A DNA stretch of 64,000 nt from NCBI RefSeq assembly GCF_001194135.2, contig NC_069000.1, positions 130,113-194,112 on the forward strand, read 5' to 3'. Positions within the stretch are counted from its first letter, which is position 1. Each line of letters begins with the position of its first letter. The notes beneath the pieces were generated by a model, which worked only from the letters and a program-made list of their open reading frames with translations, ran no database searches and had not been told where the DNA came from. This DNA is from Octopus bimaculoides (lineage: Eukaryota). Of the stretch, positions 15,401 to 18,400 are shown in pieces. The translations under genes were made by a program, and so were the position numbers.

Positions 15401-18400
15401 AACACTTACACGCCCAGTCCATATCGCCAGTACCTTGGGAGGCAAAAACAAAAACATAAAAATAAAAATGAAAAAAAAAGACAAACTGTTAAAATGGATA
15501 AACATGAAGTGGTGGTGGTGTCAGTTGTTGTTGCTGTTTAGTTCCAAGTCAACCCTGATTGAACAGACCTATGATGAATGACTTTCCAGCTGTGACCATC
15601 TCGTCTAGACATATGTAAGGCTACATCATTTAATAGGATTTGGTTTGAGAGATTTGAATGTTATTTCTAGATGGCTGAGTGAATGTGGAGAGGCTCCCAC
15701 ACGGGCTCATTACTGTTGTTGCTGGTGGTGATGATGATGATGATGATGAGGTAATCGTTATTATCAAGTATTATCTTGTTCAAATGTCCACAGCACTTTG
15801 TGTCTTTACTGCTTCTTTGCAATCATCTTTGTACCTTTTAAGAAAATTCATTCATGACATGTGTGTGTGTGTGTGTGTGTGTGTGAGAAGCTTGCTCCTC
15901 AACCACATGGTATTTTGGGTAAGCATTTTCTATAGCCCTGGGTTGACCAAAGCCTTGTGAGTGGATTTGGTAGACGGAAACTAAAAGAAGCCTACTATGT
16001 GTGTGTGTATATGTACATGTGTGTGTATCCCCCTATTACTTGCAATCAAGAATGATTTGGTATTAGCATGGTACCATGTTTCACCAATGGTTTTAGATGC
16101 CATACATATTCACAAGCTGACATGGATCACCTTCCTAATTTTGACCCAACAAAACATCCAGGATGTGACGGTGGGAGCAAGAAAAAAAGTTGCATAAACA
16201 CTGAGTTGAAAGTTCATCAATCTGAATAGGACAAAAGGCAATGCGCGTGTTTGTATGTGTGTGTTAATGTACATGTATGCATTTAAGGATTTCGTTCTCT
16301 GAGGCAACCGTCTGAGCAGAGTCCCAGTCAGTGCCCATCTTCCTCATCTGTCAGAACAACATGGCTGACCAATGCAAGTCATCACCCAGCTGGATCGTCA
16401 GAGAAAAGAACATGATATGTAGGATCCAAAGAGGAAAAACAAGCAACATAAACAATCTCAGCTAATGTACCTGAATCATACAAGTAAGAAACAGCATCCC
16501 AATTTTTGAGTATTGTTGGTTGGATATGAAATCCCATTTGACAATCCTAGAACCAAAACATGATCCCTAAGGGTCCCAGACCAGAATGCAAGTCTCACAA
16601 CTACAGAGCAAGACTGGGACGGACATGTTAAAGAATAGACCCAACATTTCCTCTGTGAGTTATAATAGAGGTATCTAAAAGAAGTTCCGGTCCGACTTCT
16701 GACCCAGAAAACCCTCACCACCAATGACTACCCAAACAGACTCAAAAACACACACAAATACATACTTTGCAAACACACAGGGGTTCTTTTACTGGTTTCA
16801 CTCATTGGACTGCAGCCATACTTGGGCACCACCAGTTAACCATATCAACCTCAGTACTTATTTCAGACAGTTCTTATTTGCATTCTTCCATATTTGTCAA
16901 ACCACAAATTACTGGATATAAAAGGATGCAATATAAACAACTAAATACATACCAGTGAAGTCATAGCCACACACACACACATCATCAACATCATTTTTAC
17001 ATCCATTTTCCTATGGTTGCATGGGTTAGATGGTTCCTGTCTCTTGGCATTGTTGAATTTCTTTGTTGTCTTCTTTATATGGTTCAACACAATGGAATCA
17101 GTTTTCGCCTTTCTCCCTGCTTATGTCTCGCTCAGTCTTTCTCTGCCGCCTCTCCCATGCATCCCACTGCATCTCTTGTACATTTCTATTTTAAATTGGG
17201 TACATGTACACCAAATAGAATTCTTTTCTAATCTTTCAGCACATCAAACATGGCCATTTCCTTGATGGCAACAAGCTTCTATCTTCCTTACTATAAATTA
17301 AAATTTGACTTTGTTGCTCAGTTAACCCTGAGGCCTTTGCTGTCTGACTGTTCTTCCCACATTTGGAATTTCTTTTCTAAACCTTCCACATTTTCAGTTA
17401 TAAAACTCAGCTCATCAGTATACAGGAATTTCAATGGACAGTTGGTCTTAGACTTTCTGATTATGGCTCAGAGAACAATAATAAGAGCAAAGAACCAAGT
17501 CTAAATTCCACAGTGAACTTGTTACCAACTTCCACTTCACTAACGACACATTTGTACAACATTTGTCTACGCTCTCAAGTCATTTATCAACAATTAGCTT
17601 TCTGAAGTAGTTCTGTGCTCTTTTCTCTCTGTGTAACTCTTCTAGGCTTATTAGCAACTAAATACTTTGATGAAAGGTAGTTAGTCTAGTGTAAAAATCA
17701 TAAAAAAATAAACTGAGATGAAATTTGTTGGTACCATTTACTGAACTACATTGTGAATATAGTTTTTACCTGTTATATCACTTTCACCTGCCTAAGTTGC
17801 TCAGATACAGTTAAGCTAATTGCATGCAGGTGTTTTCACATATGTTTAGAAGGTAACTGGTTCCTGGGCATCAATTTTCTGTCTCAGAGCTGAATTTGTG
17901 CTTCAATTAGTCACTGTAACTTGAAAGCTTCATCACTCGCATTAGAACAAGAATTCAAAGATATGCCCTCATCTCCACCATTCAACAACTTTGCAACACC
18001 AAACTATTAGCATCGTTTACTTTTATTATGAGAATTACAGTCTCCTCATAAATACACCAATATGCAACATCTCTACATATGTTAGTAAATTAATGTCTAA
18101 TTTTGTTTTTAATCCTTACTATTCACTAATGAAAACATCAAAGCAATACCAACAATGCAGTAAATTCACTTCTGCCCAGAATCAGCAAATTCCAATACCA
18201 CTTGGATATCAGGTGTTTAGAGATAACACTGAAATACATTCCTAATTATTATCTCCAAATTCAAGCCCTTTTTTCCTAATCAAATCATTTTTTTTTTTTG
18301 GTCCTTTCTTTAACATTTGCTCTTCCTTACTTGCAATGGGTCAGATAGAAGTTCAGCAAAATAGACTGATAGAATAAATGCCAAAATTCAAGTAGTAGGG

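Follow-up and report, generated by a model that had tools for sequence, protein, structure and literature searches.

The Exchanger Gene and Its Microexon

A 64,000-nucleotide (nt) window of the Octopus bimaculoides genome (contig NC_069000.1, positions 130,113 to 194,112) carries a gene for a CLC-type 2Cl-/H+ exchanger, and a 24-nt exon lies within a 12.7-kb intron of this gene, between two constitutive exons. All coordinates given here are positions in this window, and the gene is read on the minus strand. The exon is a cassette, i.e., mRNAs are made both with and without it. Taken as a whole, our results make it very probable that this is a genuine and ancient cassette microexon of a ClC-3/4/5-type exchanger, situated next to the exchanger's ATP site and presumably regulated. 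The gene and the exons concerned are as follows:

330-44029, minus strand: body of the ClC-3/4/5-type exchanger gene, with 19 further coding exons; stop codon at 332-330.
20640-20735, minus strand: upstream constitutive exon, ending ..ATGCGGCCTCG/gtaagt (...GTGATGCGGCCTCG/gtaagt), donor TCG/GTAAGT.
15410-15433, minus strand: cassette microexon GTACTGGCGATATGGACTGGGCGT, 24 nt, encoding (R)YWRYGLGV, phase 2 on both sides.
7846-7904, minus strand: downstream constitutive exon, starting tgtacag/GCGAAGTGAC..

Exon placement was guided by an approximate vertebrate ClC-3 sequence, and all 19 exons were found to have canonical splice sites. A search with the full-length protein gave the O. bimaculoides "H(+)/Cl(-) exchange transporter 5" as its best match. 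Pfam places Voltage_CLC (PF00654) and CBS (PF00571) domains on the orthologues, and two CBS stretches lie in the C-terminal 203 residues of the octopus product. Identity to vertebrate ClC-3 is ~75% over the searched region, and the closest solved structures are those of ClC-3 and ClC-5. The product also contains the motifs GKEGP and FSLEEV, which we take to hold the gating and proton glutamates. Judged by these features of its sequence, the gene belongs to the ClC-3/4/5 subfamily of CLC 2Cl-/H+ exchangers. Since the flanking exons have their borders at 20640 and 7904, the intron between them occupies 20639-7905, i.e., 12,735 nt, in phase 2. An earlier note, made from the letters of the window alone, had described this intron and the reading frame that results from inclusion of the microexon, and we obtained both as it described them.

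Splice Signals of the Microexon

On the minus strand, the sequence reads ...cttttttttcatttttatttttatgtttttgtttttgcctcccaag/GTACTGGCGATATGGACTGGGCGT/gtaagtgt, and the following signals can be recognized around the exon:

15486-15494, minus strand: candidate distal branch-point region ttttaacag, with UUAAC and branch A at 15489, read from the sequence.
15434-15485, minus strand: 3' splice-site region with the AAG acceptor, a UGC, a U-rich tract, and an AG-free zone.
15404-15409, minus strand: 5' splice site GTAAGT, the full consensus on the intron side.

The earlier note's description of a frame-preserving, 24-nt exon with a UGC at -11 to -9 and a GTAAGT donor matches the sequence exactly. The UGC occupies 15444-15442 and the acceptor AAG 15436-15434, behind a U-rich tract of ~37 nt that ends ...tttttgcctcccaag before the exon. 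Pyrimidines make up 31 of the 37 positions from -40 to -4, and the AG-exclusion zone extends over 50 nt. With a length of <=27 nt, aag/.../gtaagt borders, an intact frame, and no stop codon, the exon has the properties of a cassette microexon; its weak AAG acceptor, lying behind the long, U-rich, AG-free tract, and its perfect GTAAGT donor would together define it to the spliceosome. The branch point may lie at 15489, where the first yUnAy-like sequence is met on going upstream from the AG-free zone. With up to 3 mismatches allowed, the 24-mer has no second match in the window. It holds two CpG dinucleotides in its 24 nt, whereas the observed/expected (o/e) CpG ratio of the surrounding intron is 0.197, in keeping with the earlier remark that CpGs are kept here in a CpG-depleted intron.

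The introns of the gene (41.4 kb) were scanned for an AG with a pyrimidine tract of >=14/20, a frame-preserving open exon of 3-51 nt, and a GTAAGT donor. At these strict settings the microexon was the only site found, and the antisense strand gave none; looser criteria gave a few matches, on both strands. Therefore, the splice signals by themselves are suggestive, and certainty comes from conservation and transcripts. Neither the pyrimidine content nor the AG-free zone of the microexon is outside the range spanned by the gene's 19 other exons, and an A at -3 of the acceptor also occurs in two constitutive exons. The microexon is, on the other hand, the gene's only exon with a UGC at -30 to -5 outside the acceptor itself.

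A second candidate microexon, cag/TTCTACTGGCGT/gtaagt at 14239-14228 (minus strand, 12 nt), was dismissed for want of a pyrimidine tract and of conservation. This look-alike resembles the 24-nt exon with its middle deleted (TACTGGCG..Tgtaagt) and has no counterpart in Argonauta or Acanthosepion; it is probably either a partial duplicate that has decayed or a match by chance.

Both Forms Occur in Annotation and in Transcripts

Spliced with the microexon, the product equals XP_014783627.1 (isoform X1) over residues 73-832, with the insert at aa 667-674, and the product without it is identical to XP_014783628.1 (isoform X2). Five of the six O. bimaculoides RefSeq isoforms (X1 and X3-X6) include the insert, as do UniProt entries A0A0L8G7U9 and A0A0L8G6Z1, and the skipped form is represented by X2 and two UniProt entries. 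The gene models of O. sinensis and O. vulgaris show the same included/skipped pair. Among decapodiforms, a cluster of transcript assemblies at 90% identity holds an 824-residue form (included, 9 contigs) and an 816-residue form (skipped, 19 contigs). Some of these assemblies were traced to Sepia esculenta, in which L001-L004 carry exactly GTACTGGAGATATGGACTAGGCGT between ...CCACG and ACGCAATG..., and L011 and L012 are without the 24 nt, with flanks that are identical at 600/600 positions on each side. The 24-mer inserted in S. esculenta is identical in sequence to the genomic microexon of Acanthosepion pharaonis. Runs SRR19578107 and SRR25097173 come from juvenile/whole-hatchling, undissected S. 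esculenta, one run giving the included form and the other the skipped form. Both mRNAs, with and without the exon, are thus made, and the exon is a cassette exon.

Since the RefSeq and UniProt annotation already contains the exon, its existence was known, and the earlier note's supposition that it had not been described fails for the databases. In the literature, we found no paper that discusses the exon, and none in the library searched links "microexon" with CLCN3/4/5 or ClC-c; the main text of a 2026 preprint on tissue-specific splicing, which includes O. bimaculoides, makes no mention of the gene. New here, by comparison of sequences, are the placement of the insert two residues past R659 and the 23-nt downstream element found in three cephalopods (both described below).

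Conservation across Molluscs

An orthologous exon is present in the same intron in the genomes of Argonauta hians, Acanthosepion pharaonis, Crassostrea virginica, and Lymnaea stagnalis; it measures 24 nt except in Lymnaea, where it has 27 nt. The acceptor AAG/ and the donor /GTAAGT are the same in each of the five genomic copies examined. Conservation of the exon and its splice sites in other coleoids had been named beforehand as one way in which the exon could be checked; it was found in Argonauta and Acanthosepion and extends beyond them to oyster and pond snail. The three cephalopod exons differ at four nucleotides, and all four differences are synonymous.

At the protein level, an insert of 8-9 residues with the consensus [Y/C]WRYGxxV occurs at a position shared by cephalopods, gastropods, and bivalves, and its R-Y-G core is invariant. 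Included isoforms were found in gastropods (Haliotis, Pomacea, Littorina, Gigantopelta, Lymnaea, Biomphalaria, and Physella) and in bivalves (Mizuhopecten, Crassostrea, Saccostrea, Mytilus, Mya, Dreissena, and Ruditapes), with variants that include SARYGSVV. In all, the insert is found in isoforms of >15 mollusc species, and skipped isoforms are found in many of the same species; most annotated isoforms of Biomphalaria, Mya, and Dreissena include the exon. These mollusc isoforms were retrieved only once the full-length query was used, as a search with a 134-aa query returned only proteins of <=235 aa, mostly vertebrate genomic open reading frames, none of them with the insert. No insert was seen in the annotated isoforms of a chiton, two nemerteans, Lingula, annelids, amphioxus, horseshoe crabs, orthopterans, and cockroaches. 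Vertebrate genomic reading frames (e.g., P0065) run uninterrupted across the insert site; therefore, a homologous cassette exon is not possible there. Cephalopods, gastropods, and bivalves diverged >500 million years ago, and the distribution of the insert places the origin of the exon at or before their common ancestor.

In two limpets, the ClC-3/4/5 gene is a single intronless frame that carries CWRYGLEV, of 826 codons in Lottia gigantea (L008 201-2681) and 839 codons in Patella caerulea (L009 201-2720). The simplest reading is that this gene would be a retrocopy of an inclusion mRNA. That it carries the insert implies an inclusion mRNA in germline cells.

Other insertions occur at the same position. 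Most isoforms of Rhodnius prolixus (P0240, P0279-P0289) have NCYRINKGIFR there, after R-P-R/Q-P-K; an extra exon of the scallop Mizuhopecten supplies PKSSEGDSG and longer inserts (P0136/P0139/P0153); and Mercenaria (P0330) and Potamilus (P0155) have PLHFAKQKNRR and DNSPFLR, respectively. Compared as proteins only, these inserts share with the mollusc microexon their position after R-P-R/Q-P-K, but their sequences are unrelated or vaguely similar to it (C-Y-R-I vs. C-W-R-Y). This pattern suggests that the loop acquires cassette exons repeatedly and tolerates insertions. The fixation of the insert in limpets and the variety of inserts at one position would make this apparently insertion-tolerant loop of specialist interest.

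A Conserved Element Downstream of the Exon

A second conserved feature was found in the intron beyond the donor site:

15312-15334, minus strand: conserved intronic element CTGCCTTTGTAGAATGCTTCACC, 23 nt, located 76 nt downstream of the microexon.

The element, CTGCCTnTGTAGAATGCTTCACC, lies at +76 in octopus, +165 in Argonauta (L005 78242-78264), and +37 in Acanthosepion (L006 52532-52554). At <=3 mismatches it occurs nowhere else in these 64-95 kb loci, apart from a second octopus copy at +247 (15141-15163), which borders a run of N. It contains two UGC/YGCY motifs and is a candidate splicing regulatory element. The oyster and snail loci do not contain it at up to 5 mismatches.

Base pairing between the element and the exon was considered and rejected. 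In each of the three cephalopods, the best partner that RNAduplex gave for the element lay in the microexon, and one pair showed an apparent compensation, G-C to A-U. However, dinucleotide shuffles of the element paired equally well (p = 0.73, 0.09, and 0.51), 10-20% of other intronic windows paired equally well or better, RNAalifold favored other local hairpins over the element-exon pairing, and no conserved pairing partner for the element was found elsewhere within several kb. Since the shuffle and window controls remove the effect, we claim neither an RNA structure nor an editing-complementary sequence.

The second octopus copy belongs to a block of ~170 nt that occurs twice around a short N run, at about 14990-15334 (minus strand), and that includes both copies of the element. 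This repeat resembles an assembly artefact, duplicated at a gap, more than a biological feature.

Position of the Insert in the Protein

The insert YWRYGLGV lies at the N-terminal edge of CBS1 in a ClC-3/4/5-type exchanger, which bears out the proposal that eight residues are added to CBS1 of a ClC exchanger. The alignment of the C-terminal 203 residues with the ClC-3 structures 8jgs, 8jev, and 9dnw (E 8e-85) covers their whole length and has a single eight-residue gap, between ClC-3 R661 and R662; the insert begins two residues past the equivalent of ClC-3 R659. In mouse ClC-3, the ATP site is formed by H89, Y689, N690, K798, and R659, and the side chain of R659 flips to accommodate adenine (PMC11303396). 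The alignment gap at 661/662 and this ATP site together put the insert beside an ATP-contacting arginine at the edge of CBS1. F88 and K798, in the same part of the protein, are points of contact for the C-terminus of the inhibitory subunit TMEM9 (PMC11908120). The octopus domain can be aligned over its full length with the nucleotide-regulated CBS domains of ClC-3 and ClC-5 (8jgs, 8jev, 9dnw, and 2j9l), and its R-P-R motif, with the adenine-contacting arginine, is kept. What sets the octopus inclusion isoform apart is its insert at this point, for which neither a solved structure nor a studied isoform offers a counterpart. With its invariant R-Y-G core and its aromatic first half, the insert seems to have a specific role.

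Mammalian ClC-3 splice variants (ClC-3a-e) change the N- and C-termini and thereby sorting. As in the octopus, alternative splicing diversifies the same exchanger subfamily.

Possible Regulation and Function

We infer that inclusion in cephalopods is probably modulated through the acceptor UGC and the conserved 23-nt downstream element. Inclusion inserts eight residues between the equivalents of R661 and R662, two past the adenine-accommodating R659. Most likely, this would alter nucleotide binding or the potentiation by ATP, or else the neighboring CBS contacts with the N-terminus or with a TMEM9-type subunit. Two observations weigh against the overall interpretation of the exon as a regulated cassette next to the ATP site. 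The included and skipped isoforms of octopus are computed gene models, direct transcript evidence coming from cuttlefish, and an AlphaFold2 model of the 760-residue product (74-sequence alignment, mean pLDDT, i.e., predicted local distance difference test, of 70) has pLDDT <50 over residues 573-608, which contain the insert. The model is therefore uninformative on the conformation of the insert.

As to where the exon is used, we give a tentative first place, short of calling it probable, to broad use, i.e., inclusion by default in most tissues, with skipping in a minority of transcripts or in certain cell types, in an alternative microexon that has no neural switch. The predominance of inclusion among the annotated isoforms of several molluscs, its fixation in the intronless gene of Lottia and Patella, the whole juvenile/hatchling cuttlefish RNA that was included in some runs and skipped in others, and the oyster and snail acceptors that have no UGC are all consistent with such broad use. 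However, skipped contigs outnumber included ones in the decapodiform cluster (19 vs. 9), so inclusion is not simply the default, and the weak AAG acceptor conserved in cephalopods, gastropods, and bivalves, together with the cephalopod intronic element, points to regulated use.

We consider it possible, but rather doubtful, that inclusion is specific to neurons, where a factor of the SRRM4/Srrm234 eMIC type would activate it via the UGC and the U/C-rich tract and so give a neuronal isoform of a vesicular exchanger. With mixed, indirect support on either side, we rank this below broad use with regulated skipping. The eMIC-dependent exons of flies and mammals are reported to have weak acceptors with a UGC close by, together with extended pyrimidine tracts and AG-free zones (PMC8797185); the octopus exon has 31/37 pyrimidines, a 50-nt AG-free zone, a weak AAG, and the gene's sole UGC in -30 to -5 apart from acceptors. 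Like the microexons that depend on SRRM4/SRRM3 in vertebrates and on Srrm234-eMIC in Drosophila, it is <=27 nt long (24 nt), preserves the frame, is deeply conserved, and would add a few residues to a surface loop adjoining a ligand-binding site; in cephalopods, the UGC near the acceptor, the long pyrimidine tract, and the weak acceptor recall that class as well. The decapodiform assemblies, including those of Sepia esculenta, also vary in form from run to run. In each of the three cephalopods, the UGC itself is found at a distance of 5-11 nt from the acceptor (-11 to -9 in Octopus and Argonauta, -7 to -5 in Acanthosepion), but it is unaligned between octopods and cuttlefish and is absent within ~30 nt of the orthologous acceptor in Crassostrea and Lymnaea. 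Outside cephalopods, the UGC of the SRRM4/eMIC class is not kept; the mollusc exon differs from that class also in its perfect consensus donor, in the prevalence of inclusion among gene models, and in the fixed inclusion seen in the intronless limpet gene. Further against neuron-specific use, the pyrimidine content and AG-free zone do not exceed the range seen in the gene's constitutive exons, the exon is included in 5/6 O. bimaculoides RefSeq isoforms and in most isoforms of Biomphalaria, Mya, and Dreissena, and the limpet gene implies an inclusion mRNA in the germline.

A more elaborate possibility, which we regard as unlikely, is that the exon is an ancient regulatory switch, dating from the ancestor shared by cephalopods, gastropods, and bivalves and turned on in cephalopod neurons by an eMIC/SRRM factor together with the 23-nt element, that retunes ATP sensing or inhibition by a TMEM9-type subunit. 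Here, the YWRY segment would form an aromatic, basic loop beside the adenine pocket of an endosomal or synaptic-vesicle Cl-/H+ exchanger. If such a switch existed, it would be the lophotrochozoan counterpart of the neural microexons known from vertebrates, and it would lie in a gene that cannot hold one in vertebrates. To the notion that the exon is a chance pseudo-exon or an annotation artefact, unused in vivo, we give practically no credence: relaxed scans for splice signals do yield a few comparable sites on both strands, but the exact 24-nt insertion in assembled cuttlefish transcripts and the orthologous exon with conserved splice sites in five genomes refute it, and the cephalopod substitutions in the exon are all synonymous and the insert appears in many independent annotations.

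Whichever tissues use it, a natural, strongly conserved insert of eight residues, two positions away from the adenine-accommodating arginine, would offer a ready-made tool for work on the coupling of the CBS nucleotide site to transport. An old and well-defined mollusc microexon with many orthologues could likewise serve to test the eMIC program in lophotrochozoans.

Other Features of the Window

The window does not reach the first coding exon of isoform X1. Alternative first coding exons were seen for X4 (MATFGGEGGG...) and X5 (MTLIDMYHTLVEKYEDLD...), at 49386-49493 and 58667-58729, respectively, both on the minus strand. Within the 12.7-kb intron, two open frames at approximately 13055-13258 and 17321-17467 (minus strand) resemble, by eye, fragments of a retrotransposon reverse transcriptase. 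The window as a whole has a GC content of 37% and many CA/TG and CT microsatellites; its 2,190 N are spread over several runs, and its CpG o/e of 0.26 suggests strong CpG depletion in the genome.

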